The notes under the pieces were generated by a model. It was not told the DNA's origin and made no database searches. It saw only the letters and a list, made by a program, of their open reading frames with translations. From Haliotis rufescens (taxonomy: Eukaryota), in contig NW_025963835.1 in assembly GCF_023055435.1 (NCBI RefSeq), positions 4,464,001 through 4,528,000 on the forward strand: a stretch of 64,000 bases of DNA. Direction: 5' to 3'. Below, one piece after another: positions 21,197-63,034 of the stretch; within the stretch, counting starts at the first letter, position 1, and each line of letters begins with the position of its first letter. Made by a program: the position numbers and the translations under genes.

Positions 21197-24100
21197 ATGT
21201 TTGCAAAAGTAAAGCCGTTTACCGATGAGATACCAACTCAACGTGAAGATAAGCTTTCCACCGTGTCGGCTTCAATCTTTAAATATTTGCGTATCATTTC
21301 TTGTCTCGGAGGAATCTATCGTCGTGTGAGCCCTGGAGAGAAAATGGCAAAGTGGGACAGACTAAAACTTGTGTATGTCATATTTGTTCAAATACTTTTA
21401 ATGACAAGCGTTGTCTTCTTCTTCATTGCTACCTACAACTTTGCAACTGACTCTAAACCTGTTGCACGTCTACTGGCGTTCTGTACTGTCATGTTAATAG
21501 ATTTGTACTTGTCATTTATCTACAGTATCTTTCTGTCAAAAGCATTCCAACTGTTGCATGTTCGTTTTTGCAAGTATGAGGAACGGTACGGATTCAGCGA
21601 TGAATTCAAGAAGTTGGTGAAGAAGTTGAGAGCAATCCTTATTATCGGCCTTTTATTCACGACAGTATTTGGTCCGCTAGAATACTTCATCGTGCAAAGT
21701 TATGCTGTAGTTATGGAAGACTATCCTGTAGTTATGGACGATATATACCCTACCATTTCTTTAATGGAACCTTGGAAATCAGTTGGCCTAGTTATTACGT
21801 CCATTGGATACATATTGGTAACAATTCAGTGGCTAACTAGTTTTGTTGCTATACCATTTCTTTCGCTGTTTTTGTGGCAAGAATTTAACCGTGTTGAAAC
21901 ACAATTCCAGGAACTTGCAAACAGTCAGTGTGAAGACACTGAAGCCAGGTTCAACACCTTGGTAATTCATCATGGCCATGTAACTGAAGTACTTGAGGAT
22001 ATCAACAACTATGTGCAACACTTTATTTTCACTTGTGTATTCATGACTTTGCCGTTGGCTTGTGCCATAATATATTCCATTTTATACAAGTCAGTCAATT
22101 CTGGAGAAGTGATAGTTTACAGCACAGGTTGTGTGTGGGTCCTTCTTTGTGTAGGCTTGAGACTGCTCGTTGATGCACTGGTCAGTTCAAAGGTAAGAAT
22201 TTTACTTTTTATGTCTAAAGATATAGAAGATGATTAGGATAACTTGGATAATTGTTTCATTACGTACCAGCTTAATGTGAGAGAAAAACTTAAGCATGAA
22301 GTAACATTTTTGACGAAATCCATGAGTATTGGTATGGTTTGGTATGGTACAGTAAAAGTCAATATTACTATGAAATCCTGGACTGGAACCCTCAATCTGA
22401 GGATCCTGGTAGGTGTAATGGGTGCAACTCAATAATATACTTGCAATTGGAAGGTGGTAGATGTACAGAATATCGTTACGGTTCTTGTTGCAGGCTCACG
22501 GGACTCTACAGTACGTATGGAGGCTTGATAAAGAACGTTTCTCTGGCATAGGGCTACAGAAGGTATCTGTAAAACTACTTTTACACTCATTCATTAAATG
22601 AGTTAAATGTTCATCTCCCCTGATGAATGTTTAATTCCAAGTGGCTTATGTGATGACCAATGTGTATCCGTCGTCCATCCGTCGTGTACATGTCAATATG
22701 TGTTTTTTCTTATGCCCTTATCATGGTTAAGAAAAACAAAAAGTAAGAAAAACTAAAAGTGATGCATGTTCCGACTAATGTTGGCTCCAATATTTGGAAA
22801 ATTTGTTTCCCCTACTCAGTAAAGGACAATATGATAATGAATCATCAGTTTTGAAGATTGTGAAAGGTCAATGTAATCATAAAAATAATTGTGAAAAAAC
22901 AGTTTGAATGTATTCCACATGGTCTATAACCAAGAGATGTACTAACATAAACCTTTAACTTTGGGTCAAAGTCTCAGCGTGGTTTCTTTGGCATATGAGG
23001 AAAGATACAACAAACACATAATTAGGTTCCCCCAATTTTTTTAAACGTAAACATGGACAATGTGTCACTGAAGATCAGATTGTTACATTGTGTGAACTGA
23101 CAGTTTGTTGCCAATGCTATCAAAATATAAAGTGACCATTATATAATATCTTGTTGGAAATTCTCCTTACCTGCTTACCATAATAGGAGACCCGTGAAGA
23201 TTCCGGGGTAGAATAGGTCTTCACCAACCCATGCTTGCCCATGCTTGCCGTACAAGGTGACTATGCTTGTCGTGAAAGGCGACTAACGGGATCGGGTGGT
23301 CAGGCTCGCTGACTTGGTTGATACATGTCATCGATCCCAATTGTATGGTGATATCAATCACTGGATTGTCTGGTCCAGACTCGATTATTTACAGACCGCC
23401 GTCATATAGCTGGAATATTGCTGAGTGTGGCGTTAACCAACAAACCAACCAACCAACCAACCAAAATAGGAAGTGACATAATCAGATAGGGAGTACATAT
23501 TACTTTCTTGGCAGATATAAGCGTGAGGCATACAGGTGTTAAGTTCTCATTGGCATGTGCTTCCAAAGCTTGAGTAATGACAGTAGTTACTTGAAGTGTT
23601 TGTATTTCATGTACAATATTTGTTAATGCGACTCAAGGTAGTTCATCTCCATCTGTATAATTAGGCACATGGAAATTTCGAGTAAGAATAAACCTATTTG
23701 GTAAGATATTTTACATGTATCAATGTGTTCTTATCTGTTTTCCTATGGAAATTTGATTACATGAAACTAGTGCAAACATATCTTTATAACAGACAGAAAA
23801 TAATTGCCAATTAACAGGTCGCGTCATTGCTGGATATGACGTCGACACGAAAATAAGACAATCTGGACCACACAATCTAGTGATCGATATTGTGAGCAAC
23901 AAGTCACCGAGCCCGATCACATGCTCCTTCTGGTCGCCTCTTACGACCAGCATAGGTTGCTGCGGACCCATTGTAACCCGAAGATACAGAGCATATTAAA
24001 TGGTGATGAACAAATACAATGTTTTTGATAGTTTAACTCTCGCGCTCGGTTTATCGTCACTCGGCAGACATAGGGTATTTATCTCACTTATAGATGAGGC

Positions 24101-24962
24101 TGTCTCGTGGCAATCTGATCATTAGAATGCATTTAATGTTGTTCTGTTATTTAGATGAACCTGTTTGTGTCAAGATTGACGGGAGACACTATCGGCTTCA
24201 ACATTCACGGTCTCTTTACCATCACCATGCCAACACTCCTTGGGGTGAGTCATACTATCTATTGCATAAATAGCGAGGTTCAGTAAAGACTGAAGTAAGA
24301 AATGACCACATGACAACCACATGACCCGTACCATGTTTGAAACATTGTAAATGTGTGCCTCAAAAACGAGTGGATTTATTTTCAAAGATATGAAACCGAA
24401 GTTACCTATCATCAGTATACAAGGCGAATTATTTTTAATTTTTTTTTTTGTTTGTATCGAAATACACCCAACAGAATAATAATATGTAGAAGTATTTCTA
24501 GAGTGCCTACTTAGGCCCAGCACAGTTCAAGTTTTGGGATATAATATCGCTGACTTGAGCTATTTTCAACTGGAAATCAAACATACGATAACATCAACCG
24601 AGAGGTGTAGGTTCTTTTACCCTTCAGATTAGTAACGATTTTTCATATGTCAGTTATTGTATGCTCTAGTACTATTAGTACAAGTATTAACTAGTATTGG
24701 CCTGTTCTTACCCTTCACTTAACGCACCATAATCCAGAAAACTCTGTAGTTTAACACTTGCCTGTGTTCATAGACTCTTAAAACTTAGATTGCATATTTA
24801 CAATTCAATATTGGATACACAATACTTAAAAACACTAATATCATCCATTTTCAGATTGTCGGAACACTGGTCACCTACATAATTGTGGTTGTACAGTTCA
24901 AGCCAACAGAGCCAACGTGTCAGTGTGGCGTGTTTAGGAATGTCACACAGAGTGATATGTGA
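21197..24962 (+). CDS. Gustatory receptor-like (GRL/7TMIC) copy 1, 420 aa; exons 21197-22192, 22494-22562, 24155-24244, 24855-24962
   Basis: All introns are GT-AG and phase 0. Exon 2 = AHGTLQYVWRLDKERFSGIGLQK, exon 3 = MNLFVSRLTGDTIGFNIHGLFTITMPTLLG, exon 4 = IVGTLVTYIIVVVQFKPTEPTCQCGVFRNVTQSDM*. The TY-x5-QF TM7 motif and three 3' phase-0 introns are GR/GRL hallmarks. Confidence 0.9.
23189..23462 (+). mobile_element. SINE family B in GRL1 intron 2
   Basis: TSD aatagga. The paralogous site in GRL2 (~31240, aaataggaagtgac) is empty. Confidence 0.9.
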
Positions 24963-25582
24963 TTTTGAACACGATGTGTAACAAAATGTGTAGATGTGTA
25001 AGCTTCTATAATCACTACCTTCAGTGTGTCATCCTTACTTTCTTGTCATACCTAGCCTCTTACCTTCTTGAGAGGGAATGCTAAGGAGGTGCATCAATAG
25101 CATTGTAGGGATGTCACCACCCAGTGAATTACGTGACGAAAGACACTCGTCTCGGCATATGATGAATACATACTTGTATCTCGTTATAAAGCTGGCAGCC
25201 AACTTTGACAAGAAATGTAAAGAATAAACATGTGATTCATGTTTGATTTTCATAATACTAGTATTCTCAATATTCTATGAGTAAACTAAGGTAATATCTT
25301 AATATGTTTCCCATTGCATGACTGATTTTGAATTTGTGATTGACAGTGAGATAAGTGGAATAAATTGGTAAAATGCTTGGAACTAAGGTATTGATTCTAT
25401 TCCGACTCTTCTTGTTCCAGAATGAAAACTCTTGAGCTGTGTATTCGCCAACCATTCTGATCACTTACATAAAATTTGATTTCATGTGCACATTGCATTC
25501 GTTTCAACAACTGCATCATGAATAAATGAACCGCTTAAAGAGTTGTTGATTGTGTCGTGCTTGCATCATCATAGTTGACTAA

Positions 25583-25841
25583 AGTGGTGGCCAAGTCGTC
25601 GAAGTCGCCGAAATTCACTGTGCAGACTTGGATGACGAGATCCTTTGATCGTGGGTTCGGGTCTCGATCTTCCCCCGATTATGTTTCTTGGTTTGTCAGC
25701 ACCATTCCTGTGCTCGTGGCTTTCACCAAAGTAATAATCGTCTGAAACCTGCATCACTTCGGGCTTTACTCCCATTATTAGCGGATATGATATAACTGGA
25801 ATACTGTTCAAAGCGGTATTAAACTCAACTAGCTCACTCAC
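25583..25841 (+). mobile_element. Old SINE family C downstream of GRL1; paralogous copies at ~33512-33770 and ~41862-42128
   Basis: Degenerate family C sequence at the equivalent position 3' of copies 1, 2 and 3. Confidence 0.7.
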
Positions 25842-26389
25842 TTCACTTCAATTGAAGTGGTTTTATGTGTAATGTCCATCTAGCAGCGTGTAAAATCACG
25901 GAAATATGAGTGCCATTTTTAAATCATCTATTGTGTATATTTCTTTTATTATTTGGCTCGTTTTTTGACGGTGTATAATGTAAACTATAATTCCTCATTT
26001 GCTGACAAAACTGCGTATTACAATTTCCAATCGTAATAGTAACTCTGCACTAGTCGGGAATGAGGTCATAATAGATGTATCGCAATGACGTCAGTATCAA
26101 GGGATTCGTGTAGAAGGTTGTCACAATGTCTGCAAACATTTTTAATTAATTCGATGTTGAATGTATTTGCTACCAATCATCATCTAATCCTACAATTTGC
26201 TTCTGATAAAACATCAGTGACTCTCTATGGGGTAAACAGGTCTTAGCACCTAAATATACTACCGACAGAAATAAGGGAACTGATGAAATGGCAGTGAATG
26301 TGTAATGACGATACTTGTGTGTCAAAGTAATTTCGGGTGTGTGTAGATCAATATCTGTCCTGTCCACCATGTTTGGCGATACATGCACG

Positions 26390-29105: not shown

Positions 29106-32100
29106 ATGTTTAGAAAGGTAAAGCCATCTACAGGTGAGATTTCATCTCAACGTCCAGACGAGCTGTCCACAGTTTCAGCCTCATTCTTTAAATATTTACG
29201 TATCATTTCTTGTCTCGGAGGAATCTATCGTCGTGTGAGCCCTGGGGAGAAAATGACATGGTGCGACAGACTTAAACTTGTGTACGTCATATTTGTTCAA
29301 ATAGTTTTTATGACAAACGTTATCTTCTTCCTCATTGTTACTTACAACTATACTATAGACTCTAAACCAGTTGCACGTCTTCTGTCGTTCTGTGCTGTAA
29401 TGTTAATAGATTTGTACTTGTCTTTCGTCTACAGTATCTTTCTGTCAAAAACATTCCAACTGTTGCATGTTCGTTTTTGTAAGTATGAGGAACGGTACGG
29501 ATTCAGTGTTGGATTCAAGAAGTGGGTGAAGAAGTTGAGGGCAATCCTTATTGTCGACGTTTTATTCACGACAGTATTTGGTCAACTAAAATACTCCATG
29601 GTGCAAAACTATCCTGTAGTTATGAACGATATATACCCTACCATTTCTTTTATGGAACCTTGGAAATCTGTTGGCTTAGTTATAACGTCCATTGGATACA
29701 TATTAGTAGAAATTCTGTGGCTAACCAATTATGTTGCTATACCATTCCTTTCGCTGTTTTTGTGGCAAGAGTTTAACCGTGTTGAAACACAATTCCAGGA
29801 ACTTGCAAACAGTCAGTGTGAAGACACTGAAGCGTGGTTCAATACCTTGGTAATTCATCATGGCCATGTAACTGAAGTGCTTGAGGATATCAACAACTAT
29901 GTGCAACACTTTATTTTCACTACTGTATTCATGACTTTGCCTGTGACTTGTGCCATAATACATTCCATTTTATCCAAGTCAGTCAATTCTGAAGAAGTGA
30001 TAGTTTATAGCACAGGGTGTGTTTGGGCCCTTCTGTGTGTAGGCTTGAGACTGCTCGTTGATGCACTGGTCAGTTCAAAGGTAAGAATGTTACTTTTTAT
30101 GTCTAAAGATATAGAAGATGATTAGGATAACTTTGATAATTGTTTCATTACGTACCAGCTTAATGTGAGCGAAAAAACTTAAGCAATGAAGTAACATTTT
30201 TGACGAAATCCATGAGTATTGGTATGGTTTGGTATGGTACAGTAAAAGTCAATATTACTATGAAATCCTGATTGGAACCCTCAATCAGAGAATCCTGGTA
30301 GGTCTAATTGGTGCAACTCTATACTATACTATACTTGCAATTGGAAGGTGGTAGATGTACAGAATATCGTTACGGTTCTTGTTGCAGGCTCACGGGACTC
30401 TACAGTACGTATGGAGGCTTGATAAAGAACGTTTCTCTGGCATAGGGCTACAGAAGGTATATGTGAAACTACTTTTACACTCAAACATTAAATGAGTTAT
30501 ATGTTCATCTCCCCTGATAAATGTTTAAATCCAAGTGGCTTATGTGATGACCAATGTGTATCCGTCGTCCATCATCGTGTACATGTCCATATGTGTTCTT
30601 CCCGTTTCCAATCATTTACAAAAAACAAAGGTGTTCCCATCCTTGTTATCAAATTGAAGAAATAATACGCCATTAACACGGTTAAGAACAAATTTCTTTT
30701 AACAACAAGGTGATGCATGTGGTAAATTTGTTTCCATTTCTCAGAAAAGGAAAAAAATGATCATATTCTTTTTTATCACATCCAAAAATCTAAAGATTGT
30801 AGATCATCATGAATCATCAGTTTTGAAGATTGTGAAAGGTCAATGTAATCATCAAAATAATTGTGAAAAACCAATTTGAATGTATTCCACATGGTCCATA
30901 AGCAAGAGATGTACTAACATAAACCTTTAACTTTGGGTCAGAGCTTCAGCGTGGTTTCTTTGGCATATGAGGACAGAAACAACAAACACATAATTAGGTT
31001 CCTTCTTTTCCCTTGGGGCAACTTCCCCAAATTTGTTGAAACGTAAACGTGGACAATGTGTCATTGAAGATCAGATTGTTACATTGTGTGAACTGACAGT
31101 TTGTTGCCAATGCTATCGAAATATAAAGTGACCATTAGAACTTGACATAAGAGCATTATAAATTGATCTTTGCCAAATTTGGAGGAAGGGTAATATCTTG
31201 TTGGAAATCCTGCTTACCTCCTTACCATGCCTCTTCCAAAATAGGAAGTGACATAATCAGATAGGGAGTGCACATTACTTTCTAGGCAGATATAAGCATG
31301 AGGCATACAGGTGTTGAGGTCTCATGCAGCGGGCATGTGCTTCCAAGTTTGAGTAATCTGGTGTGATGCACGTTTTTGAAAATTCAGTGATGGAGCTGCT
31401 TCTGTGATTAGTCCATGACGTAACCATAGTTGGAACTTGATAAGTTGGCAACAGGTTTATCTTTTAATCATGACAGTAGTTACTTGGAGTGTTTGTTTTT
31501 CATGTACAATATTTGTTAATGCGACTCAAGGTAATTGATTTCCATGTATATAATTAGGTACATGGCACATTTCGAGTAAGAATAAACCTATTTGATATTT
31601 TACATGTATAAATTTGTTCTTTTCTGTTTTCCTATGGAAATTTGATTACAAGAAACTAGTGCAAACACATATCCTTATAACAGAGGGAAAAGAATTGCCA
31701 ATTAACAGGTCGCGTCATTGCTGGATATGACCCCGCACTCGGCAATATTCCAGCTATATGACGTCGACACGCAAATAAGACAATCTAGACCACACAATCT
31801 AGTGATCGATATTGTAAGCAACAAGTCACCGAGCCCGATCACATGCTCCTTCTGGTCGCCTCTTACGACCAGCATAGATTGCTGCGGACCCATTGTAACC
31901 CGAAGATACAGAGCATATTAAATGGTGATGAACAAATACAATGTTTTTGATAGTTTAACTCTCGCGCTCGGTTTATCGTCACTCGGCAGACATAGGGTAT
32001 TTATCTCACTTATAGATGAGGCTGTCTCGTGACAATCTGATCATTAGAATGCATTTAATGTTGTTCTGTTATTTAGATGAACCTGTTTGTGTCAAGATTG

Positions 32101-32889
32101 ACGGGAGACACTATCGGCTACAACATTCACGGCCTCTTTACCATCACCATGCCAACACTCCTTGGGGTGAGTCATACTATCTATTGCATGACGTGAAAAT
32201 AATGAGGTTCAATAAAGACTGAAGTAAGAAATGACCACATGACAACCTCATGACCCGTACCATGTTTGAAACATTGTAAATGTGTGCCTCAAAAACGAGT
32301 GGATTTATTTTCAAAGATATGAGACCGAAGTTACCTATCATCAGTATATAAGGCGAATTATTTTTATTTTATTTTTGTTTTTATCGAAATACACCCAACA
32401 AAATAAAAAGACGTAGAAGTATTTTAAGGGTGCCTACTAAGGCCCAGCACAGTTCAAGTTTTGGGATATAATATCGCTGACTTGAGCTATTTTCAACTGG
32501 AAATCAAACATACGATAACATCAACCGAGAGGCGTAAGTTCTTTTACCCCTCAGATTAGTAACGATTTTTAATATGTCATTTATTGTATGCTCTAGTACT
32601 ATTAGTACAAGTATTAACTAGTATTGGCCTGTTCTTACCCTTCACTTAACGCACCACAATCCAGAAAACTCTGTAGTTTAACACTTGTCTGTGTTCATAG
32701 ACTCTTAAAACTTAGATTGCATATTTACAATTCAATATTGGATACACAATACTTAAAAACACTAATATCATCCATTTTCAGATTGTCGGAACACTGGTCA
32801 CCTACATAATTGTGGTTGTACAGTTCAAGCCAACAGAGCCAACGTGTCAGTGTGGCGTGTTTAGGAATGTCACACATAGTGATATGTGA
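29106..32889 (+). CDS. GRL copy 2, 413 aa; exons 29106-30080, 30388-30456, 32077-32166, 32782-32889
   Basis: Same exon sizes (69, 90, 108 nt), GT-AG phase-0 introns, TYIIVVVQF motif, ends NVTHSDM*. Confidence 0.9.
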
Positions 32890-35502
32890 TTTTGAACACG
32901 ATGTGTAACAAAATGTGTAGATGTGTAAGCTTCTATAATCACTACCTTCAGTGTGTCATCCTTACTTTCTTGTCATACCTAGCCTCTTACCTTCTTGAGA
33001 GGGAATGCTAAGGAGGTGCATCAATAGCATTGTAGGGATGTCACCACCCAGTGAATTACGTGACGAAAGACACTCGTCTCGGCATATGATGAATACATAC
33101 TTGTATCTCGTTATAAAGCTGGCAGCCAACTTTGACAAGAAATGTAAAGAATAAACATGTGATTCATGTTTGATTTTCATAATACTAGTATTCTCAATAT
33201 TCTATGAGTAAACAAAGGTATTATCTAAATTTGTTTCCTATTGCATGACTGATTTTGAATTTGTGATTGACAGTGAGATAAGTGGAATAAATTGGTAAAA
33301 TGCTTGGAACTAAGGTATTGATTCTATTCCGACTCTTCTTGTTCCAGAATGAAAACTCTTGAGCTGTGTATTCGCCAACCATTCTGATCACTTACATAAA
33401 ATTTGATTTCATGTGCACATATGGCATTCGTTTCAACAACTGCATCATGAATAAATGAACCGCTTAAAGTGTTGTTGATTGTTTTGTGCTTGAATCATTA
33501 TAGTTGACTAAAGTGGTGGCCCAGTCCTCGAAGTCACCGAAATTCACTGTGCAGTCTTGGATGACGAGATCCTTTGATCGTGGGTTCGGGTCTCGATCTT
33601 CCCCCGATTATGTTTCTTGGTTTGTCAGCACCATTCCCGTGCTCGTGGCTTTCACCAAAGTAATAATCGTCTGAAACCTGCATCACTTCGGGCTTTACTC
33701 CTAACTTAGCGGCCAGATATAACTGGAATACTGTTCAAAGCGGTATTAAACTCAACTAGCTCACTCACTTCACATCAATTGAAGTGGTTTTATGTGTAAT
33801 GTCCATCTAGCACCGTGCAAAATCCAGGAAATATAAGTACCATTTTTAAATCATCTATTGTGTATATTTCTTTTATTATTTGGCTCGTTTTTTGACGGTG
33901 TATAATGTAAGCTATAATTCCTCATTTGCTGACAAAACTGCGTATTTCAATTTCCAATCGTAATAGTAACTCTGCACTAGTCGGAAATGAGGTCATCATA
34001 GATGTATCGCAATGACGTCAGTATCAAGGGATTCGTGTAGAAGGTTGTCACAATGTCTGCAAACATTTTTAATTAATTCGATGTTGAATGTATTTGCTAT
34101 CAATCATCATCTAATCCTACAATTTGCTTCTGATAAAACACCAGTGACACTCTGCTATGGTAAACAGACCTTAGCACCTAAATATACTACCGACAGAAAT
34201 AAGGGAACTGATGAAATGGCAGTGAATGTGTAATGACGATACTTGTGTGTCAAAGTAATTTCGGGTGTGTGTAGATCAATATCTGTCCTTTCCACCATGT
34301 TTGGCGATACATGCACCACTCCTTGATGGCATACTATTGATTAATTTGCGTGTGGTTGCCCTTGGTATTGCCTGCCATTCCGCCTGAAGAGTTACTCCAA
34401 GCTGGGTCACGTTGGCGGGTGCTCGGTCTGTGATTCTCTGCTGGGTCTCAGGGCGCTTTTTAAAGTCTGCTGCATAATTTCAGGCGGGCTGCATAGAGCA
34501 GGTTGTTTGCGGCAGATGTTGAAATTAGCCTTCCTGTTATTGTCGGGAATGCTCTATTGATAACAGGAGCAGATGTGAATCTAATGCGTGGTGCAATTAA
34601 TGATGTGAGACGGTCTTCTCCGGTTTACGTTTGGCCTGCCACATCCAGGTCTGATTGCAACCGCATCCATTTTGACGGTACTTGTCCCACAGTCGAGAAA
34701 TTACACTATTTGATTTGGCAAACATTCGGGCAATTTGGGATATTGACGCCCCTACTCCATCATATCCACAATTCGCCATTTGGTCTCTTCATCGAGATAC
34801 TGTTAGTTCCCTTTTTTTGTCGGTAGTATATGTATTTTTGTTGAAAGCGGTGATATTGTTGAATTCGTGACATCTTTCTCCGTCAACGTTTGCCTGTTCC
34901 AAACTCAGTTATTTACAGCCTGCTGTCATATAGCTTGACTATTGCTAAATGAGGGAAAACACAAACACACATCCTTTTTTGATTCACAAGGTTGAATTTT
35001 TCCAGTTGAAAACATGGATGTTTGCTCTTGCAAACACAGACGATTGGTTCCGTACACAAAGGAGCTTAGAAGTGACCTTGTCAGTTTACTCAATTACCAA
35101 ATGGAATCTCTCTACTACAGTAAACACTCCCTGAGTTATCACAAACATAACACATTTGTGTATTTGACCTTGAAATTGAATCTGACCTTCAATATTTGAG
35201 ACCAGCATTTCAAGCACATTCCTCAGGCCTATCAAGCATGTAAACTAAATATGTCCCTTTGTGGAGTTCACCATAACAACGACAATGAAGCATGTTTCTC
35301 ATTGCAAGAAGGTAACAGTTACCTACCATTGTTGCCACCAATATGTTGTCCTACATAAGTATGCAAACAATATAACCTCCATACTGCATTAAATTTACAA
35401 AATCAAAATATCTTCAGAAGATGTTAAGAAGAATCGCAAACTGTATGTCTGACGTTCCCTGTTATCTTGACCTTACACATTGCTTGACCCATGACCTGGT
35501 CT

Positions 35503-46945: not shown

Positions 46946-47204
46946 CTTGTAAATTGTGTTTTCACAAAAATTCACCATATACCGTGACCAAGTTCCTTTG
47001 TCAAGTGGTATACATCTCAATTAGGTAATTATGGTAACGGTTCTCAGACAACTCTACGTAGATGTTTTTGTAGAATAAATAAACGGTTTCCGAGTTGTGC
47101 TCTTGCTAAGGAAACATTCGTAAAAATTCCCAAACTATCAAAAGGCACGAGTTTAGCACTAGGCCTTTTTATATGCCAAATATGGAAGATATATTGTACG
47201 GTTT

Positions 47205-47485
47205 TCAAGATCTGTGCCAAGTTTGGTTATTTTCAGTGTAAGTCAAAGTCGTTGCCATGGAAACTCGAAAAATATATATATTTTTTTTCTCCAAACTATC
47301 AATAGGCACCAGTTCACCACCAGACCTATCTATGTGCCAGGTTTGGTTAAGTTCACTCTGATGGTTTTTGTGTTCTGCTCCGGAAACGAAATGTGACGGA
47401 CGGACGGATGGACGGATGGACGGAAAGACGGACGGACGGCACCCATTCCTATATCCCCCTTCCACTTCGTGGCGGGGGATAATAA
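47205..47485 (+). mobile_element. Non-autonomous Helentron-like (HINE/DINE-type) element end
   Basis: Core repeat tgtgcca(a/g)gtttggtta twice, (GACG/GATG)n microsatellite, terminal hairpin atcccccttccacttcgtggcgggggat followed by aataa. Confidence 0.6.
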
Positions 47486-47789
47486 CCGGAAGAAAATAAC
47501 ACACACGAAGGAAACAGCGAGAGGACGAAACAGAGTTAACTCCCTCGCGAGAAAAGGGTCATCCGTTCACAAACTGTTCAACCTATCCATGCGTAAATAT
47601 GTTTAAACAGTTAACTGAAAATATGTTTAACACATAGCAGAGATCTATTAATAAAAGGTCAAGCATATATCGCAGTTTCAAGTTCCAAGATCCTGCTTAT
47701 GGGTTTCGTATCATTGTTACCTTTTACCGCACTGTTATTACAATTCACCACAGTTTATTACATTTTACGGCGTTATTACAAGTTACGTT

Positions 47790-48052
47790 GTATCACATCA
47801 ATTTTGTCATATAGCCTTGTGGATATTTTTTGTTGTTTTATGCATAGATCTAAATATGAAGAACAATTGGCGGTTTCGCTGGTCTCTGCTATTTGTAGCT
47901 TTAGTGAGTAAATAAGTGGAAAGGAATGGATTATTTGATCATTTTTGAACGATATCAGATCACTGATGTACCTGAAACTTAAGTTAAACTTATTGGCCAA
48001 ATTCCCTTGTTTTGATTTTGCCAATCCGAGCAGAAATTCTGACTCGTATGTA
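47790..48052 (-). mobile_element. Penelope-like element RT fragment
   Basis: YTYESEFL...FNLSFRYISDLISF...SYLDL...STRLYDK matches the PLE RT pattern (FRYIDD..SYLDL..LYDK). Confidence 0.7.
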
Positions 48053-48054
48053 TA

Positions 48055-49685
48055 CACAAAGAAAAATGTTAGGCACTATTTCTGAACCATGACACATGGC
48101 AAAAATCATAGCATGGGATGACTGACCACAGGAGCTGGGCGATACCAATTTCATCGGATAGAACAAACATTTGACAACAAATAAAGTAGATATTGGTGAG
48201 TTGTGATTGAAATTTACATCATGGTAACCCAGGTACTGTTTTTGACCTTATATACCTAAAAAAGGTAATGAGCTGCAGGATTGAGTAAACGAGTTACGTT
48301 TCATGTTTCATGTGAAAATGTTCCTTAAAGTCTCTACTTGACATGACACGTGAAACAGATCAGTAGCGGGTATAACCGCCACGTGCCCGGATGACACATT
48401 CCACCCTACGTCTCATGCCTCCAGTCAGACGTTGGATCTGTTGATGGGTCAACAGCAACCACTCCTGATGCAATGCTGCTTCTAGTTGGCGTAAATTTTG
48501 TACAGGAGGATCTCGTGCCCATATGCGCCGCCCGCGAATATTCCAGACATGTTCAAGGGGATTCAAATCTGGGCTCATTGCTGGCCAGGGTAGTCGTTAT
48601 TGCATTGGCCCTCATGTAATCCACGACTGCATGTGAACGATGAGGCCTGGCATTGTCATCCATGTACAGAGGTCGAGTAACAAGAGGGTGGTTGTCAAAA
48701 TGAGGAACGACGACCGGCCTCAAAACGTCCCGGTTGTACTGAGCCCCTGTTAAGTTGCCCCTTATGGTGACCAAGTCCAACCTGCAATCATGAGAGATAC
48801 AACCCCAAACCATTACCGAGTCCCCGCCGTATGCAACAGTCGGTTTAATGTTCCTGGGGGTGTAAACCGTGTTCCGGTGCCTCTAAAATCTCGTTCTTCC
48901 ATTAGTGACGTGGAGCAGAAAGCGACTTGAGTCTGACCAATGGATCCGTTCTCAGATTCAAGTTCTGTCGCGCAATACACCATGCTAAACGAGCAGCTTT
49001 GTGGCGATCTCTCAACAAGGGACGCCTTCTGACTCGACTAGCCCTCAGTCCTGCTGCTTTCAGCCGGTTTCTGGTGGTTCTGGTGCTGATGCGACGATTG
49101 GGCAACCACAGCTGTTTCAGACGAGTACTTGTTAAAAAGGGTCCTCGGCGTTTGAGACGAAGGAGGTCCCTGTCTTCGCGATGTGTTGTCACAGGAGGTC
49201 TTCCGGATCTGGGAAGGTCCTGTACATCACCGGTCTGAGCACGTTTCTCGAATAAATGGCTTACGACAGTGTGATTATACCCAAAATTCCGACCAATGGC
49301 ATTACAAGACATTCCTGGGTTATGCATGCCGATCATTTGCCATCTTGTGGCGTTTGACAATCGCCTTCGTGCCATCATCACACAAATGTCATGCAATAAC
49401 TGTTTAAAACCGAGCTGATATGGTCTGTTGATATCATGACAGTTACATGACAAAAAAGTTTTTCAATGTTTTCTAATCCTTCAATTTATGGTCTTCGGTA
49501 AAATTCCTTTCTGCTCATATTCTTTTGGAACACAAGATAAACTTGCTTTGGGACAACTTTTGCATCACATGAGGTTTACATATACGGCTTATAACAATCG
49601 TACATCGCGTTATAATAGTCATCATTAAGTGCCAAAAGTAACAGCTCACAAATATGGTGGGTGGCGCTTAACTTTTGTGCATGTG
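48055..49685 (-). mobile_element. Tc1-like transposon, near full length, frameshifted transposase (49379-48360)
   Basis: HTH plus RSGRP; VMVWGCIS; DDNARPH; SPDLNPLEHVW...GGYTRY; imperfect TIRs CACA..AAA.GTTA.GC with TA flanks. Confidence 0.9.
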
Positions 49686-50407
49686 TATATATACTCCGAA
49701 ACGTTGTGTTCCTCATAATAAAAAAGTTGACATCCATAAATTCTCTTCCTTATGTTTTCAATTGTTCAAATATTACAGCGATCGACCTGGCATTGTGTGA
49801 AGATCATACAGATTGATTGTTTGTAATATATATGTATGTAATATGTAATATTCCAGCTATGTGACGGCGGTCGTATGGCATAAGATTTGCTTAGTGTGTG
49901 GAACTGTGAAACCGTCTTTGACATATTTCAACATTATGAGGCCTTGATGTTGTACAAGTTGGATGTATTATTAGCTATAGGTGAGGTAAAATGGGGTTTA
50001 ATTAATGTTGCGTTCATGATTATATTTATTAAAGCGACGTCCATATACGCGCGCCCGCGCGTGCGTGCGTGCGTGTGAGGCTGCTTGTAGTGGTCCGGAC
50101 GTATACTCCTTGTACTATGCCGGTGTTATAACGCTTGCTTACTAGGATACTATGTCCCAGATGACTATCTCGAAAAGTTAAACAGATATCTGTGAACGCA
50201 TCTAGCGATGGCGTGCACACGCAATCTCTTCAGAACGCAATCTGACCAAGTATTGCTCCTGGCCCAACTTGTTGTACATGGGTGAAGGTGGCAGGACAAA
50301 AGCAAGGCTTGTTTTCCTAACGTCATACGACAAAAGGATAGTTTTTAGTGATACATCAACCAATACCCAACAATTTCCACTTGACATTTAACATGTTCTC
50401 ATATATA

Positions 50408-50923
50408 CTGAACAGCACTGAAAACGCACCAGCAATAAATCTTGAAATATTACAAAAACAGTAAATACAATTACGTCATCAGTGTAATGAAGACATATAG
50501 GGTTAAAATGAAAAGTCAATATCTGGTATGTCCGCCATTGACAGCAACACTGGCCATGCAGCGTCTTCTCATTGACGTAGTGTATCTTCAAGTTCTCTCA
50601 GGTTCTGTACTTGCGGACGACGTGAGAGGCGTTGACCCAGGTAATCCTATAGATGTTCAATTGGCGATAGATCGGGTGATAGGGCTGGCCATGGAAGCAG
50701 AGGCAGATTATTGTTCGCTAGGTACTGTGTTGAAACCCGTGATGTGTGCGCTCTTGCATTATCTTGCTGGAAGGTGTGCATATCCTGGTGCTGATGAAAG
50801 AATGGGATGACGTGATTTGCCAATATGTTATTCCTGTAGTAAAGGGCATTAACTCTTCCACGACAAACATGGAACTCTGTTCGATGGTTATGACTGATGC
50901 CGCCCCACACCATGACACTCCCT

Positions 50924-50954
<31 letters not shown>

Positions 50955-51496
50955 CGATCTGTCTGTACAACGCAGTCATTTTGTGGTAACGTTCTCCACG
51001 TCGACGCCACACTCGCAGTCGACGTAAATGAAAACGGGACTCATCAGAGAACAGCACACCATGCCACTGCCGCAATCTCAAATGACGATGCCTTTTGGCC
51101 CAACGCAGACGTTCATTTCGATGTCGATCAGTGAATATGGGTCCAACATATGGACGTCGAGCACGTAGCCCTGCTGAGCGGAGACGTCGACGTACGGTGT
51201 CAGCACTGATCAATTCCGTCGGCCTTGTACGGTTGCTGCAGTCCTGGTAGCCGGAAGTGTACGATTACGAAGATGCTCGTGAAACAAAACACGTTTTCCA
51301 TGATGTGCACGCAATTTGTTGCGTTTTGGCGATTTCGCTCACACAAAATTTAGGAATGTGTTTTGACGAGCTGGTCTTCTTCAAATCTTCGTCCAGAACG
51401 TCGTATATTACTCATTCACTTATATATTTTCATATGACTTAAGCCCGGATAAAAATCCATCCATTTTCATGGTGGTGCGTTTTCAATGCTGTTCAG
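50408..51496 (-). mobile_element. Tc1-like transposon, internally deleted
   Basis: TIR CTGAACAGCA(C/T)TGAAAACGCACCA with TA TSD; FSDESRF, QQDNARAH, SPDLSPIEH (DD34E-type). Confidence 0.92.
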
Positions 51497-53321
51497 TATA
51501 TGTTGCATACGAAATGCATGTGTATGGTTAAAAAAGACACAGTATTCGGAAAACAAACACGGAGGCTGTCAATAGGTTCTTCGCTTCGCTCAGGTCTGGA
51601 GTTAAAAAAACAGTACGTCTGAAACATGCAAAATGACTTTATAGCTTGGTAATATGACCTATAGTAATCAGTAGTAACATCCTCTTCGGAATGCTGCTGT
51701 AAAGGGGTTGTAGGTCGTCTATATTCGAAAGATAATATAAAAAGTCAGTACCAGAGAATATACAGTCTCGATTATCCCCCGAAACAGATAAAACTGTAAG
51801 CATTGATGTTGCTTTCTACAACTGTCATTGAAGCAACACCTTTTGCACACCTTGATCACCTGTAGCTATCAGTCTGAATTGAACAGGTCTCGCGATTTTC
51901 ATCATTACCAAGTGAATGCAATCTCTCTGGGAACTTTACACTGAAGTTGATGGTAGTCCATCATAAATCTTAGTATGTCGGATCTTTTGATACCTTCATA
52001 GAATATTAATGCGATCCGAAATTTGACAACCGATAATAATTCCCTAGAATCCCGTGCTATTTTGAGATCCACACAGCAGACGACACAACTACGTCACTGT
52101 GGCTCTCATGTGGTCAACTAAATGTTATCCTAATTTCAGGGCAATTCTTAAAGGATATTTTATGAATCCTATGAACTTGCTGTCATCCATAATGCTGTGG
52201 AGGTCTTCCGATAACCTTTGGTGGAAGACAACAAAATGTGACATAGCCTGTTTCTATGTCACCCGCAAAACTTCGTTTGGTCAGGGGTTTAACAAGATAC
52301 ACGCGCGGCAATGTCCTTAATTCCAGGATCATTTATCTCTACCAACACGAAGCAAACAAAACAGTATTGATTAAACGTAGAAGATAAACGCTATTACATT
52401 AGTTAACCTTGACAATGTTGGGGAGTGGTAACAAGAATCATTTCCAGTTGTCAAACCAATAAGTATTGTGTTTAATTTTGGATGAAATACATCAGACGAT
52501 GGAACATGGCGTTAGGTTTCCTTTACGGATGCGTGTGTTGGTGACTCGGTGTCAATTTATCGGCATGTGTGATTGAAGAGAACTAACACACGCCATGGAG
52601 AGCGTACTTTTCACCTGAAGCACCGTTATCAGGACAAGCATTACCAGAAAATTGTTTGGATTCAGAGGAAAGCGCCCTAATACACTGTTCAGGAACAATG
52701 TCTTTGGCAGTGTTCTTTCAGCGTAAGCGAACGAAAGAAAGGATAACGACTTGCAGATGACCGTTTACAGAGAAAAAAAATCCACTGGAATATTATTTGT
52801 TCTTGTACACGTAATGGAACATAGCAGAACATCGACTGTAGTCCACAAGACTTAAAGGAGAGCGCTCGACAATTTGGAAATGTAGTAGTTTGAAGCGTTC
52901 TTGTTTTCACCAACTCACCAGCTATATGAAACAAAAACAGGAATCTGCTGCCATCTTCAATATTCACACAGCGCCTGTATTGACATTACTGAACGAACGT
53001 TGATCCACCTATATACATTACGTTAGCAAGTTTGCTTGGAACTGTTTGTGATTGTCATTGTTTATTATATCAATGTATTTATACATACTAGTATTTGAGG
53101 ACATTGTTTGGTCTCGGAATGTAGGACAAACCCATTGGGTTGTTTCTGTGTTCCGTTCTTTAATTGTGATCGTTAGGATAGGTACAAATTAGTGACGTCC
53201 ATTCTTGATATCTCATCATGATATGATAGTGATGGAATATTGCTACAAGTGGTGTAAAATCGTTTTGTGAAAACCGGCGCGTCAGCATTTGGAAACAACT
53301 TATTCTTACTTATTAAATAAG

Positions 53322-56300
53322 ATGTTTACGAAAGTAAAACACTTTACGGGTGAGATACCAACCAAAAATCAAGTCGTGTTGTCCCCCGTTTCAGCTTCAT
53401 TCTTTAAATATTTGCGTGTCATTTCTTGTCTCGGAGGAATCCTTCGTCGCGTGAGCCCTGGAGAGAAAATGGCAAAGTGGGACAGACTAAAACTTGTGTA
53501 CGTCATATTTATTCAACTAGTTTTAATGACAAGCGTTGTCTTCTTCTTCATTGCTACCTACAACTTTGCGATTGACTCTAAACATGTTGCACGTCTACTG
53601 GCGTTCTGTACTGTCATGTTAATAGGTGTGTACTTGTCATTTATCTACAGTATCTTTCTGTCAAAAGCATTCCAACTGTTGCATGTTCATTTTTGCAAGT
53701 ATGAGGAACGGTACGGATTCAGCGATGGATTCAAGAAGTGGATGAGGAAGTTGAGAGCAACTGTGATTGTCGTTCCTTTATTCGCGGTAGTACTAAGTCC
53801 ACTAAAATACTTTATGACGATGGGCTATCCTGAAGTTAGGGACGATATCTATCCTACCAATACCTTTATGGAACCTTGGAAATCAGTTGGATTAGTTATC
53901 ACGTCCATTGGATACACATGTTTAGAGATTCAGTGGCAAAGCAGTTTTATTGTTGTACATTTTCTTTCGCTGTTTTTGTGGCAAGAATTTAACCGTGTTG
54001 ACACACAATTCCAGGAACTTGCAAACAGTCAGCGTGGAGACACTGAAGCCAGGTTCAATACCTTGGTAATTCATCATGTTTGGATAACTGAAGTGCTTGA
54101 GGATATCAACAACTATGTGCAACACTTTATATTCACATGTGTATTTTTTACTTTGCCTATTATTTGTACAATGGTGTATTCCATTCTATCCAATCCAGTT
54201 AATTCTGTAGAAGTGATTGCTTACAGTACAGGGTGTACGTGGACTGTCCTGAGTTTTGGTCTCGTACTGCTCGGTAATGCACTGGTCAGTTCAAAGGTAA
54301 GGATTTTGTCTTTATTTTATACTGTTTTATCTTAGGATATACATGTGTGTAATGATTATCATATCAGAAATCGTGAGTGGGTGAATCAATGTGTTTTTGC
54401 CGCTTTGAGCATTCTTTCATTGCGTGTCAGCTCAATGTGAGAATGATGCAGGTCTTAGACGTTTTTGTTGAAATTTATGAGTATTGGTATGGTTTGTTAT
54501 GGTACGGTGAAGACGCATAAGAACCAACTTGAATTTCGAACGCACAATCAGTGGATGGTAGCAGGACTAAGGAATACAACAAGGAGTACATGTAAGTGTA
54601 CAATACAATGTTATGGTTTTCATTGCAGGCTCACGGGACTCTACAGTACGTGTGGAGGCTTGACAAAGAACGTTTCTCTGGCAAAGGGCTACAGAAGGTA
54701 TCTGTGAAACTACCTTTACACTTTATTACGCCTAGACAAAATCATGTAAAATGATACCCCGGCCTTAACACCCACACTGCATAGCTGACACCGCTATATC
54801 GTTAATCGCCTCTTACGACAAGCATAGTCGCCTTTTACGACAAGCATGGGTTGCTGAATACCTATTCTACCCCGGATCTTCACGGGTCGACCTCAGTTGG
54901 AGCAAGTGGGGAGGATAGGTGACTTGGTTGATTGCATGCCATTGTACCCTGCCTGAGTATAATAAAAATCACTGGGTTGTTTGGTTCAGACTCGAGACAG
55001 TTTTTCAGTCAGTTTCACAGTGGTCTGATTTAGATCAAAACATATTTGTGCCAGTACTAAATTAAATTTAGAATCAAACGTGCAAGGTGAGGTTTTAATG
55101 TTTAATGGTAGCATAGCCCTACATTGAAAATAAGTGCGATTGTATTCTACATGTAATTCTTCCATGACGAAATTTAACACAGATCTGTTGGTGAATTAAA
55201 TACTAAAATCTGTCTGATATTTTTAGCAGTTTCAATTAATAGACATCGTTATGTATAGGTGGGGGCACGAGTGGCCCAGTCGTCTAAGGCGCCGCGATTC
55301 GCTGTGCAGAGTTGCGTCCCTTAGGCACGCCAGAAACCTATGATTGTGGCTTCGAATCACGGTTAATCGCCCAGATTATGTTTCTAGGTTTGTCAGCACC
55401 CTACCCGTGCTCGTGGGTTTCACCGAAGTGGTAAACGTCTGAGACCCGCATCACTTCGGGCTTTTCTCCCACACTTCGGGCTTTTCTCCCACATTGAGCT
55501 GACACGCTGTGATATAACTGGAATAATGTCGAAAGCGGCGTTAAAACCAACTCCCTCTCTTTGTATAGGTTATGAGAAGCATCAAAAGTGTAGGTTATTA
55601 AGTGGCACCATAAAGAAAATGAAGTGAACCTTTCCATGTGTAGTTCTACATCACATCATTATTATGACGTGTTTGCATTCTCACGCAATAAATAGTATGT
55701 CACACTTCACAGAAGAAGCGCCAATTTTATGATCTTTCGACGATAGTGTTTTATACACAAGCAAATATATATTGGTGTAATTCACAATTTTGTACCGTTT
55801 AGAGACCTACTTCGCAACAGTTTGCATGTCATACTTGGTTGGTGAAGCAGTGAGGAATACCATGTTTGTTGAAAGTAACATGCCACATTAAGATCGGACA
55901 GGAATTTCCAGAGGGTGAGAGACGCCATACCAATGACTGGGTGATACATTTTTTGCTTCTGTTAGTTCCTAAAGGAAAGGCACATTTCTTGCATTTTGCC
56001 AAAGCCTATTTAACGTTAAATTAGTTAAATGTTATGTTCCTCCCTCAGACCCAAATATTTAAAAGTTGTAAATTACATTTCGAGAGTTTCAAATATCAGC
56101 CAATTTGAAGATTGTAAAAGGTCATGGTGATCATCAAAGTAAATGTCATGACGTGCAACCGACCAAGTCACTGAGTCTTGCCACAGACCATTTGATCACC
56201 TCTTTGCATACTTTAGGTTACTGGGAACCTATTTTAAATTGGCACATAAAGAGCATGTTTAGTGGTGATTGAAAACCGCGATATCGTTATCGTTATCGTC

Positions 56301-56673
56301 ACTCAGCATTTATTTCACGGACAGATAAGGCTGCCTTGTTGCCCACCATATACTGTCATGCATGTCATGGTGTGCATGGTCATAGGCTCATTTGAAGTCT
56401 TAACCTGCTTTTGTACTTTAGATGAACCTGTTTGTGTCAAGACTGACGGGAGACAGTATCGGCTACAACATTCATGGCCTCTTCACCATCACCATGCCAA
56501 CACTCCTTGGGGTGAGTCATATTATTATTGCACGTCGTGGAAATAGCGAGGAGTCACTCAGTCATATAATTCAGTAATATGTAGAATCCAAATGAAAATT
56601 ACATAATTTGTTTACATATTTACTTATATTGATATCTATTATAACATTTTCTATGTAATTATATTATTATTAC

Positions 56674-56704
<31 letters not shown>

Positions 56705-56975
56705 GCTATTGTTTTCCATTACTGTCCTTTTATCGTTTACATACTTCTCTTATTCCGGTCATAACGAACCATAAACCAGATACTGTGTATGAACAGTTCA
56801 CTATGTTCCGTATTAGGGAGAAGGAAGACACGATACTTATTACAGCCATGTCATCCACTTTCAGATTGTAGGAACACTGGTCACCTACATAATTGTGGTT
56901 GTACAGTTCAAGCCACCGGACACTTCTTGTCAATGCAACATGTTAAGGAATCTCACGGAAGGTGATATGCATTGA
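53322..56975 (+). CDS. GRL copy 4, 414 aa; exons 53322-54296, 54629-54697, 56422-56511, 56865-56975
   Basis: GT-AG phase-0 introns; exon 4 = IVGTLVTYIIVVVQFKPPDTSCQCNMLRNLTEGDMH*. Confidence 0.9.
54798..54888 (-). mobile_element. SINE family B, 5' fragment
   Basis: Begins exactly GACCCGTGAAG on the minus strand. Confidence 0.7.
55260..55559 (+). mobile_element. SINE family C in GRL4 intron 2
   Basis: TSD tgtataggt; internal 20-bp duplication cacttcgggcttttctccca. Confidence 0.88.
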
Positions 56976-59689: not shown

Positions 59690-59910
59690 GTCACGGCGAA
59701 ATTCTTTTACCACGTGAACCCGATGCACAGGTGCGTTATCGTCCTGGAATATGTAGTCATCATCGGGGTAATGACGAACAACATCAGGCCAAACTTTGTC
59801 ATTCTGAATATCAATATACTTGATGATGATAGCAAAAATGGAGCCTTCTACAACTGTCAGTGTAGCAACACTGTGATACGTGTTGGATCCCAAATCATAA
59901 GGCCACAATT
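59690..59910 (-). mobile_element. Tc1/mariner catalytic-domain remnant
   Basis: YIFQDDNAPVHR. Confidence 0.65.
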
Positions 59911-61688
59911 TTGACGATTTCTTTACACACCTTTAACTTTAACTGGTCTGTTGATTTTCATCATTGCCAAGTGAATATAATGTCTCTGGCATCCTCACGC
60001 TGAATTTCATGGTGGTCCAACAAAGATCTGATGATGTCAGAACATCTTATTCCTGCATTGAACAATAATGCGATCTGTACTTTGCCAGCAGATAATTATT
60101 CTCTAGATTCCCGTGCTATTTTTGTTTATGCTCATGCGATCCACACAGCAGACGACACACGTCCACGTGACGCTCACGTGATCAACTACTTCTTATCTTA
60201 CTTTTCAGGGCAATACTTAAACAAATATTACCGCACGCTGAAAATTTAACTGCAAACATTATGCTGTGCGGTTTTCCGAATATTTATAGTTGAACAAAAT
60301 GTGACATTGTACCAACTTTGTGATGCATCCCCAAATTATGAGGCCACAACTTCACAGTTTGTTCAGAGAAAGTTCCTTTCCTGCCTTCACAGAAAATATT
60401 AGTGGCGTCGACGATTTTGCGCACATCTTGCTCACCCGTTGCTGACAGGTTTCGGGAATTTTCATCATTACCAAGTGGGTACTTTACACTGGACTTCATG
60501 ACGACACATGGTGTCACAACTACGCCCATTTGACTCTCACGTGATCAACTACATGTTATCTTAATTTCTTAAAGAATATATTACAGCCCGCTGAAACTTT
60601 AATCGCATGAGCGTGCAGTCATACATTATGTTGTGCGGTTTTCCGAATACTTATGGCGGAAGGCAACAAGATGTAACATAGCCTGTTTCTCTATCGCCCG
60701 CAAAACTTCGTTTGCGTAGGGGTTAACAAGATTCACGCTCGGTAATGTCATCAATTACATGATCATTTGTCTCTGACACCAGAACTGTTGAACCAACACG
60801 AAGCAAACAAAACAGTATTGATTGAACGTAGATAATAATCCCAATTACATTAGTTAACATGGACAATGTTGGGGAGTGGTCACAAGACCCATTTCCAGTT
60901 GCTAAACCAATTAGTGTTGTGTTTAAATTGCTTTTAAACAGTCATAATGCATTCCATTCGGATGAAATGCATCCCATGATGGAACAGGCATGTATTGGTG
61001 TATCATGTCACTGCGATTGCAGAAAACTAACACACGCCACGAAGTGCATATTTTCACCTGCTGCGCCGTTATCAGGACAGACATAAACAGACAATGGTTT
61101 GGATTCAGATGAAAGTGTGCAGGAACAATGTTTTTGATAGTGTTCTGTTCGCGTAAGCGCACGTAAAGGAAGATGACGACTAACTGATTATCTTGTTCAG
61201 AGACTGGACAATTATTGGAACTGGAATATTATTTGTTCTTGTACACGTTATGAAATAAAGCAGATCATAGACTGTGATCCGCAAAACTTGAAGGAGAGTG
61301 CTTGATAATTTGGACATAATATAGGAAACCTTCACTGGATACTCAGCTATATGTACAGACGGAAGTAACTTGAAGCGTTGGTGTTTTCACTGACACAAGC
61401 TGTCAGAAATTGGAACAGGAATCTGCTCATCTTCTTCAATATTCACATAGCGCGGGTAACGACATCACTGAACAAAGGTATATCCTCGATTGTGAGAGAC
61501 TTTAGAACAGACAATTGGAAACGTGTACATTACAAACTTTAAGAGGCCTATTCTTGATGTCTGCTCATGATGTGATAGTCATGGAATATTGATACAAGTG
61601 GTGTAAAATCATTTTTACTCGCACATTGATTTTGTGATAATTGGCGCGTAAGTATTTGGAATCAACTTATTCTTACTTATCAAATAAA

Positions 61689-63034
61689 ATGTTCGCAAAA
61701 GTAAAACACTTTACGGGTGAGATACCAACCCAAAATCAAGTCGAGCTGTCCCCCGTTTCAGCTTCATTCTTTAAATATTTGCGTGTCATTTCTTGTCTCG
61801 GAGGAATCTTTCGTCGCGTGAACCCTGGAGAGAAAATGACAAAGTGGGACAGACTTAAACTTGTGTACGTCATATTTGTTAAAATAGTTTTAATGACAAG
61901 CGTTGTCTTCTTCTTCATTGCTACCTACAACTTTGCAATTGACTCTAAACCTGTTGCACGTCTACTGGCGTTCTGTACTGTCATGTTACTAGGTGTGTAC
62001 TTGTCATTCGTCTACAGTATCTTTCTGTCAAAAGCATTCCAACTGTTGCATGTTCGTATTTGCAAGTATGAGGAACGGTACGGATTCAGCGATGGATTCA
62101 AGAAGTGGATGAGGAAGTTGAGAGCAATGGTGATTGTCGTTCCTTTATTCGCGGTAGTACTAATTCCACTAAAATACTTTATGACGATGGGCTATCCTGA
62201 AGTTAGGGACGATATCTATCCTACCAATACCTTTATGGAACCTTGGAAATCAGTTGGATTAGTTATAACGTCCATTGGATACACATGTTTAGAGATTCAG
62301 TGGCAAAGCAGTTTTATTGTTGTACATTTTCTTTCGCTGTTTTTGTGGCAAGAATTTAACCGTGTTGACACACAATTCCAGGAACTTGCAAACAGTCAGC
62401 GTGGAGACACTGAAGCCAGGTTCAATACCTTGGTAATTCATCATGTTTGGATAACTGAAGTGCTTGAGGATATCAACAACTATGTGCAACACTTTATTTT
62501 CACATGTGTATTCATGACTTTGCCTGTGATCTGTACCATGGTATATTCCATTCTATCCAATCCAGTTAATTCTGTAGAAGTGATTGCTTACAGTACAGCG
62601 TGCGTGTGCACCCTTCTGGGTTTTGGTCTGATACTACGCGTTGGTGCACTGGTCAGTTCAAAGGTAAGGATTTCGTTTACTTTTTAATATATTTTAAGGA
62701 TGTGCCTGTAGGTAATGATTATCATATCAGAAATTGTGAGTGAGTGAGTGTCGTTTGCCAGCTTAATGTGAGAATGATGCAGATCTCAGACGTTTTTGTT
62801 TCATTGGTACTGTTTGGTATGATACGGTAAAATCTTTATTAGCACCAATCCGCGATTCGAACGCACAGTCAATGGATGGTTGTAGGGCTATGGAATACAA
62901 CTCTATAATAGACTTGAAAGGTGTACATATTGGTGTACAGTACATCGTTACGGTTCTCGTTGCAGGCTCACGGGACTCTACAGTACGTATGGAGGCTTGA
63001 CAAAGAACGTTTCTCTGGCACAGGACTACAGAAG
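61689..63034 (+). CDS. GRL copy 5, partial; exons 61689-62663 and 62966-63034; exons 3-4 presumably beyond the window
   Basis: 325-codon exon 1 ending SSK|gtaagg; exon 2 = AHGTLQYVWRLDKERFSGTGLQK|gt. Confidence 0.85.

Follow-up and report, generated by a model that had tools for sequence, protein, structure and literature searches.

The stretch of DNA analysed here is a 64,000-nucleotide window from the red abalone Haliotis rufescens (RefSeq assembly GCF_023055435.1, contig NW_025963835.1, positions 4,464,001 to 4,528,000 of the forward strand), which contains no N bases. The open reading frame (ORF) listing of its plus strand includes five paralogous frames of 290–350 amino acids (aa), located at 21185-22237, 29106-30125, 37335-38207, 53289-54335 and 61641-62687. 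We interpret the region as a tandem array of five four-exon gustatory-receptor-like (GRL) genes, each encoding a subunit of a seven-transmembrane ion channel (7TMIC), with four of the genes intact and one damaged, and we assign this reading a probability of approximately 0.85.

Each gene starts with a long first exon of 975–996 nucleotides (nt) that ends in the conserved residues VSSK and is followed by a GTAAG or GTGAG donor. The exons further downstream were identified from their conservation and motifs. A 69-nt exon (AHGTLQ...LQK) was found in all five genes and a 90-nt exon (MNLFVSRL...TLLG) lies inside the window for genes 1–4, while the final exon varies in length between the copies (Table 1). 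A scan for the motif TY-x5-QF returned four plus-strand matches in the window, each immediately preceded by a ...TTTCAG acceptor, and when the gene units were aligned to each other by BLAST, the 69-nt exon was among the small conserved islands in otherwise diverged introns. All four exons are bordered by AG and GT and have lengths that are multiples of three, which places the three introns in phase 0, the last of them six codons upstream of TY. Upon examination of the next 6 kb of the contig, the last two exons of gene 5 were found 3.3–3.9 kb downstream of the window end. In genes 1, 2, 4 and 5, the reading frame is open throughout with canonical splice sites, and the product length is approximately 410 aa per gene.

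The original prediction, made from the sequence of the window, had described five paralogous long exons ending in SSK before a gt donor, followed by exons of 69, 90 and 99–111 nt, and this description was confirmed to the base, as were the limits of the array it proposed: 21197 is the first base of the gene 1 start codon and 63034 the last base of gene 5 exon 2. It had counted at least five genes in that range; of these, gene 3 is damaged, and the last two exons of gene 5 lie past the window. Its product ended at ...VVVQF, whereas the genes encode a further tail of 17–21 residues after this point.

The damage to gene 3 is located at its 5' end. The ancestral start codon has become ATA (37187-37189) and a single additional base near 37325 disrupts the frame, leaving an open product only from the internal ATG at 37335, with the first approximately 49 residues lost; the final exon of this gene also stops three codons early. 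Gene 1, for its part, contains a 21-nt tandem duplication (21704-21745) that adds seven residues (AVVMEDY beside PVVMDDI) to the predicted extracellular loop between transmembrane helices 3 and 4 (TM3–TM4), and that is not present in the other four copies. Neighbouring genes are spaced approximately 8 kb apart; the interval from gene 3 to gene 4 departs from this, being roughly doubled by transposon debris.

A protein database search with gene 1 exon 1 as query returned ten proteins, all from Haliotis species. Three are RefSeq models for genes of the array, all named "uncharacterized protein": P0001 (LOC125379978, 414 aa) corresponds to gene 5, P0003 (LOC124135033, 361 aa) to gene 3 from the internal ATG, and P0009 (LOC124135032, 248 aa) to the last 160 aa of gene 1 exon 1 plus exons 2–4. 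These proteins contain each defined exon of genes 5, 3 and, in part, 1 exactly, and the junctions thus agree with those of an independent gene predictor. Being identical to the window exons, the three proteins were used for all full-length tests. The array had been called hidden, which is true of the ORF track that misses it, but less so of RefSeq, where three of the five genes are modelled with the same junctions. P0009 is probably truncated (21197-21703 being affected), as gene 1 can be read without interruption from its conserved ATG at 21197, and this model, together with genes 2 and 4, for which none was seen, points to possible gaps in the public annotation. In a public model from Haliotis cracherodii (P0010), the products of the 69-nt and 90-nt exons are present twice in succession, which suggests a chimera that reads through from one tandem gene into its neighbour.

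Table 1. Exons of the five GRL genes and transposon-related features between genes 3 and 4. Positions refer to the window unless the contig is named; S0, short N-terminal helix; TM, transmembrane helix.
Feature	Position	Strand	Description
Gene 1 exon 1	21197-22192	+	332 aa; N-terminus, S0, TM1–TM6; donor GTAAGA
Gene 1 exon 2	22494-22562	+	69 nt; end of TM6 and loop towards TM7a; exact match in P0009
Gene 1 exon 3	24155-24244	+	90 nt; TM7a, beta-hairpin, start of TM7b
Gene 1 exon 4	24855-24962	+	108 nt with stop; TM7b TYIIVVVQF; tail with CxC and NVT sequon
Gene 2 exon 1	29106-30080	+	325 aa, intact
Gene 2 exon 2	30388-30456	+	69 nt
Gene 2 exon 3	32077-32166	+	90 nt
Gene 2 exon 4	32782-32889	+	108 nt with stop
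Gene 3 exon 1	37187-38162	+	damaged; 276 aa from internal ATG 37335, without N-terminus and S0
Gene 3 exon 2	38498-38566	+	69 nt
Gene 3 exon 3	40443-40532	+	90 nt
Gene 3 exon 4	41111-41209	+	99 nt with stop; 3 codons shorter than in genes 1 and 2
Gene 4 exon 1	53322-54296	+	325 aa, intact
Gene 4 exon 2	54629-54697	+	69 nt
Gene 4 exon 3	56422-56511	+	90 nt
Gene 4 exon 4	56865-56975	+	111 nt with stop
Gene 5 exon 1	61689-62663	+	325 aa, intact; residues 1-325 of P0001
Gene 5 exon 2	62966-63034	+	69 nt
Gene 5 exon 3	contig 4531324-4531413, past window end	+	90-nt exon, same splice signals
Gene 5 exon 4	contig 4531788-4531898, past window end	+	final exon, same splice signals, TYIIVVVQF
Transposon debris between genes 3 and 4	46264-51213	-	not part of the genes
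Tc1/mariner transposase fragments	48902-49453, 50647-51213	-	HTH_Tnp_Tc3_2, DDE_3 (Pfam)
Weak endonuclease-like ORF	46264-46812	-	part of the transposon debris

In connection with family membership, the three RefSeq proteins all score above the curated gathering threshold (26.6 bits) of the Pfam family 7tm_7 (PF08395). P0001 reaches 65.1 bits (E 9.5e-18, profile positions 4-367 of 370), the partial gene 1 protein P0009 59.0 bits and P0003 42.5 bits; P0001 additionally matches Trehalose_recp at 34.2 bits. A full HMMER scan, run against 1.8 billion representatives, yielded 147 relatives. The nearest of them beyond the window's own Haliotis clade are other Haliotis GRLs and proteins of Lottia, Patella and Mya, several of which bear the name "Gustatory receptor" or that of a "gustatory receptor for sugar taste 61a-like". 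A family profile built from 47 relatives (A1) matches the solved Drosophila Gr64a at 2e-23 over nearly its full length, and also matches the solved MhOR5, Orco, Gr43a and Bombyx Gr9. The final exon of all five genes encodes TYIIVVVQF, in agreement with the TM7 motif of the family, (T/S)Yhhhhh(Q/K/E)(F/L/M) (PMC7746228), and three phase-0 introns at the 3' end are a hallmark of the same family (PMC9998090). Indeed, a GRL on another H. rufescens contig that is only approximately 24% identical has the same layout of 69-nt, 90-nt and final exons with the same intron positions. We therefore consider the assignment of the array genes to the GRL/7TMIC family secure.

The tail that follows TM7b (17–21 aa) carries a conserved CxC motif and an N-x-T sequon. 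Insect gustatory receptors (GRs) usually end shortly after QF. Among the mollusc relatives with the TM7 motif, a sequon is found in the tail of 28 out of 36 and a cysteine in that of 23 out of 36. Both features would make sense outside the cell and may be an indirect sign of the inverted topology of the family (N-terminus inside, C-terminus outside).

The predicted structure leads to the same family. The AlphaFold2 model obtained for A1 (predicted local distance difference test (pLDDT) 89.7, predicted template modelling score (pTM) 0.87) has a short N-terminal helix (S0) followed by six long ones, and a beta-hairpin divides the seventh into TM7a and TM7b. When the model was compared with the PDB using Foldseek, the top 23 matches were all insect GRs, odorant receptors (ORs) or Orco, with TM-scores of 0.58–0.72 and E-values from 5e-9 to 5e-5, after which the TM-score drops to approximately 0.1, i.e., noise. 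We also predicted a homotetramer from residues 186-414 of P0001. The interface score derived from aligned errors (ipSAE) was 0.73 in three out of three runs, while the best of three controls scored 0.00; the runs shared at least 71% of contacts, and partner pLDDT was 74 or higher. In calibration, the mark for this score was attained for 21 of 30 solved one-chain pairs and for none of 23 single chains. The predicted interface is formed by residues 343-359 of TM7a, by the hairpin and by TM7b, with T385, Y386, Q392 and F393 among its residues. Taken with the Pfam and Gr64a profile matches, the TM7 motif and the phase-0 introns, the predicted fold agrees with the gustatory-receptor-like channel identity that had been put forward originally.

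There are clear differences as well as similarities between the array products and their characterized relatives. With insect GRs (Drosophila Gr64a, 8JME/8ZE0, and Gr43a, 8JM9; Bombyx Gr9, 8VC1/8UVT) they have in common the Pfam family, the near-full-length profile match, a fold with TM-scores of 0.62–0.72, the canonical TYhhhhhQF in TM7b and a predicted tetramer via TM7a and TM7b, as well as, according to descriptions in the literature, the three phase-0 3' introns. On the other hand, sequence identity is only 13–16%, the array products are shorter (approximately 410 versus 440–490 aa), their predicted extracellular C-terminal tail with its CxC and sequon is longer, and the host is a mollusc rather than an arthropod. 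With Orco and the ORs (Apocrypta Orco 6C70, MhOR5 7LIC, AaegOR10 and AgamOR28) they share the 7TMIC fold with S0, long cytoplasmic extensions of TM4–TM6, TM7a, the beta-hairpin and TM7b, while the sequence match is limited to the C-terminal third. The ORs, unlike the array genes, are an insect-only offshoot of the GRs, and we found nothing that points to a pairing of the array genes like that of co-receptor and tuning receptor in the Orco/OR system.

Closest outside Haliotis are the GRLs of the molluscs Lottia gigantea, Patella caerulea and Mya arenaria (21–28% identity, E 1e-27 to 1e-15), which bear the UniProt label "Gustatory receptor" and are uncharacterized like the array genes. The array genes are set apart from them as a Haliotis-only clade with recent duplications of its own. 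Molluscan GRLs have been on record since 2015 (Robertson 2015; Eyun 2017; both cited via PMC7746228), and the suggestion that the array may represent an undescribed chemoreceptor subfamily was in this respect overstated. In a literature search combining Haliotis with gustatory receptor, we found no paper linking Haliotis to GRLs; the term "GRL" in a Charonia paper refers to GRL101, an unrelated G-protein-coupled receptor (GPCR).

The five genes differ from each other unevenly along their length. Pairwise comparison of exon 1 gave synonymous divergence (dS) of 0.09–0.32 and ratios of nonsynonymous to synonymous divergence (dN/dS) of 0.34–0.64, below 1 for every pair. Between the two subgroups of the array, dN/dS is 0.5–0.64. 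The youngest pairs are genes 2/3 and genes 4/5. To judge from these rates, the duplicates are young and purifying selection on them is relaxed. Variable positions among the five paralogues make up 62% of TM3, 53% of the TM3–TM4 loop (EL2), 48% of TM1 and 42% of TM6, compared to only 4 of 68 positions in exons 2–3 and the TM7b part of exon 4. Such a split between a ligand-facing half and a pore and assembly half is usual in the family (PMC7746228). In the tree, all window genes fall in a Haliotis-only clade (support 94/97). Within this clade identity ranges from 57 to 97%, compared to 35% for the next relative. H. rubra, H. asinina and H. cracherodii have retained orthologues, and duplications occurred separately in H. 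asinina on the one hand and H. rufescens/H. cracherodii on the other. The low dS, the dN/dS ratios under 1, the damage to one copy and the duplications specific to lineages all accord with the young birth-and-death array that had been predicted. Lastly, the 3' halves of units 1 and 2 (23834-26000 and 31756-33927) are 96.7% identical over 2.2 kb, a stretch that spans the end of intron 2, exons 3–4 and the 3' flank, while exon 1 is 90.7% identical. The greater likeness of the 3' halves suggests gene conversion or a mosaic duplication history.

The subfamily of the window has exactly five copies in the genome, but the family as a whole is much larger. A genome scan with profile A1 gave 99 exon-level matches, among which at least 59 loci are near-full-length GRL first exons, two of them with in-frame stops; the count is a lower bound, as 100 of 220 candidates were scored. 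By comparison, a genome scan with Pfam 7tm_7 found 6 loci only, being too insensitive when applied exon by exon. GRL tandem arrays are present on nine contigs, namely that of the window (C57) and C605, C223, C124, C556, C604, C575, C146 and C168. Most of the first-exon matches end at profile position ~331-333, which points to a first intron shared family-wide. A much more divergent GRL first exon is also located on C57 itself (4571873-4572799, minus strand), approximately 44 kb beyond the window end, with E 1e-30 to the family profile. For a second GRL cluster on C57, a look at 8 kb did not reveal the small exons. What emerges is a large family in tandem arrays, with expansions specific to lineages, some pseudogenes and ligand-facing regions that vary, the pattern of a chemosensory repertoire.

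Other features were noted in the window outside the array. On the minus strand, two overlapping ORFs at 15407-16223 have RVT_1 (reverse-transcriptase) matches and are probably a frameshifted fragment of a long interspersed nuclear element. On the plus strand, overlapping ORFs at 12567-13407 consist of a repeating unit of ~20 aa (about 60 nt; ...LDSWHSPWIHGIRLGFMAF...), which looks like a minisatellite rather than a gene. A 132-aa ORF at 140-538 (minus strand), in which an acidic stretch precedes a ...GDGGVMKKILTQG... segment, has no Pfam match and possibly represents an exon of an adjacent gene.

A plausible mechanism for the array products can be proposed from their solved insect relatives, in which four subunits form a cation channel, TM7b lines the pore and TM5–TM7a provide a cytoplasmic anchor (PMC7746228). 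By analogy with these structures, and in keeping with the tetramer prediction, four array subunits would join via the cytoplasmic TM5–TM7a anchor, with TM7b and its TYhhhhhQF motif lining the central pore, and binding of a ligand in the variable extracellular-facing half (TM1–TM4, TM6) would open the cation channel. Both ligand gating and cation selectivity are inferred for the array products from these relatives. In this reading, the array arose by recent local duplication under purifying but relaxed selection, the ligand-facing half diversifying while the pore half stayed strictly conserved. As to its role, external chemoreception seems to us the most likely, at about even odds, based on the behaviour of the family in arthropods and on the birth-and-death pattern, and on these only.

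Several points weigh against this interpretation. We know of no function, ligand or expression site for any mollusc GRL. The gene models and splice junctions rest on sequence and RefSeq models, and genes 2 and 4 had no protein model among the search matches. When exon 1 alone was compared with 7tm_7, three of the five genes scored 10.8–18.9 bits, below the threshold, and two had no match to it, because the best-conserved part of the protein sits in exons 2–4. The tetramer score may owe something to insect tetramers of solved structure that the prediction model had learned, and since similar tetramers have already been solved, the prediction is to be read as a likeness and not as proof. Furthermore, some GRLs beyond arthropods sense light, and one acts in development (PMC7746228).

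This last point leads to the strongest alternative, namely that the genes encode genuine GRL/7TMIC channels with a non-chemosensory role, such as sensing of light or reactive oxygen, like the LITE-1/GUR-3 proteins of C. elegans, developmental patterning, like Grl1 of Nematostella, or internal or metabolic sensing. Non-insect members do play parts beyond chemosensation, and expression data are sparse (PMC7746228). However, the non-arthropod members that sense light or act in development (LITE-1 and GUR-3 of C. elegans, and Nematostella Grl1, of the same superfamily; PMC7746228) are few-copy genes, at least by description, while the at least 59 loci of H. rufescens, in many tandem arrays and with lineage-specific duplications, form a pattern expected of environmental receptors. 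The concentration of variation in the ligand-facing half is likewise unlike that of single-copy developmental or photosensor genes. We thus regard a non-chemosensory role as possible but somewhat unlikely. It is much less probable that the array is an evolutionary relic of decaying copies that are neither expressed nor functional. Gene 3 lacks its ATG and is frameshifted, the RefSeq model of gene 1 is partial and none was seen for genes 2 and 4, and dN/dS is fairly high between the two subgroups, all of which would be consistent with decay; on the other hand, all four exons are open with canonical splice sites in four copies, every pairwise dN/dS is below 1, TM7a–TM7b is nearly invariant, and orthologues have been retained in the three other abalone species, making this reading very unlikely. 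The idea that the products are seven-transmembrane GPCRs instead of ion channels, for which one could cite the seven predicted helices and three very weak profile matches to GPCR constructs (E 3e-4 to 3e-3, over short N-terminal stretches), was rejected on the fold and has a negligible probability, since the significant Foldseek matches are GR, OR and Orco exclusively with no GPCR above noise, TM7 is split by a hairpin in the AlphaFold2 model, and Pfam reports 7tm_7 and no match to 7tm_1.

Within external chemoreception, a more specific role can be imagined. The red abalone is a classic model of chemically induced larval settlement, and the Haliotis-restricted GRL clade, with an extracellular tail that is conserved, glycosylated and cysteine-bearing, could conceivably provide ionotropic receptors for algal or settlement cues in larvae or adults. 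We consider this a long shot; if true, these would be the first deorphanised GRLs outside arthropods.

Many such arrays exist in the genome, molluscan members of the family had been reported before, and database models were already available for three of the five genes. Given that the family is known and that the genome holds dozens of similar loci, the biology is expected rather than surprising. Nevertheless, GRLs outside arthropods are to our knowledge almost entirely uncharacterised, and what is added here for one compact, young cluster is a set of curated four-exon models, together with a confidently modelled fold, a prediction of the tetramer interface and an overview of where the paralogues differ. 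The genes of the array are thus practical candidates for asking whether molluscs use 7TMIC channels for chemoreception, and they may be a useful candidate set for a first functional study of a mollusc GRL.

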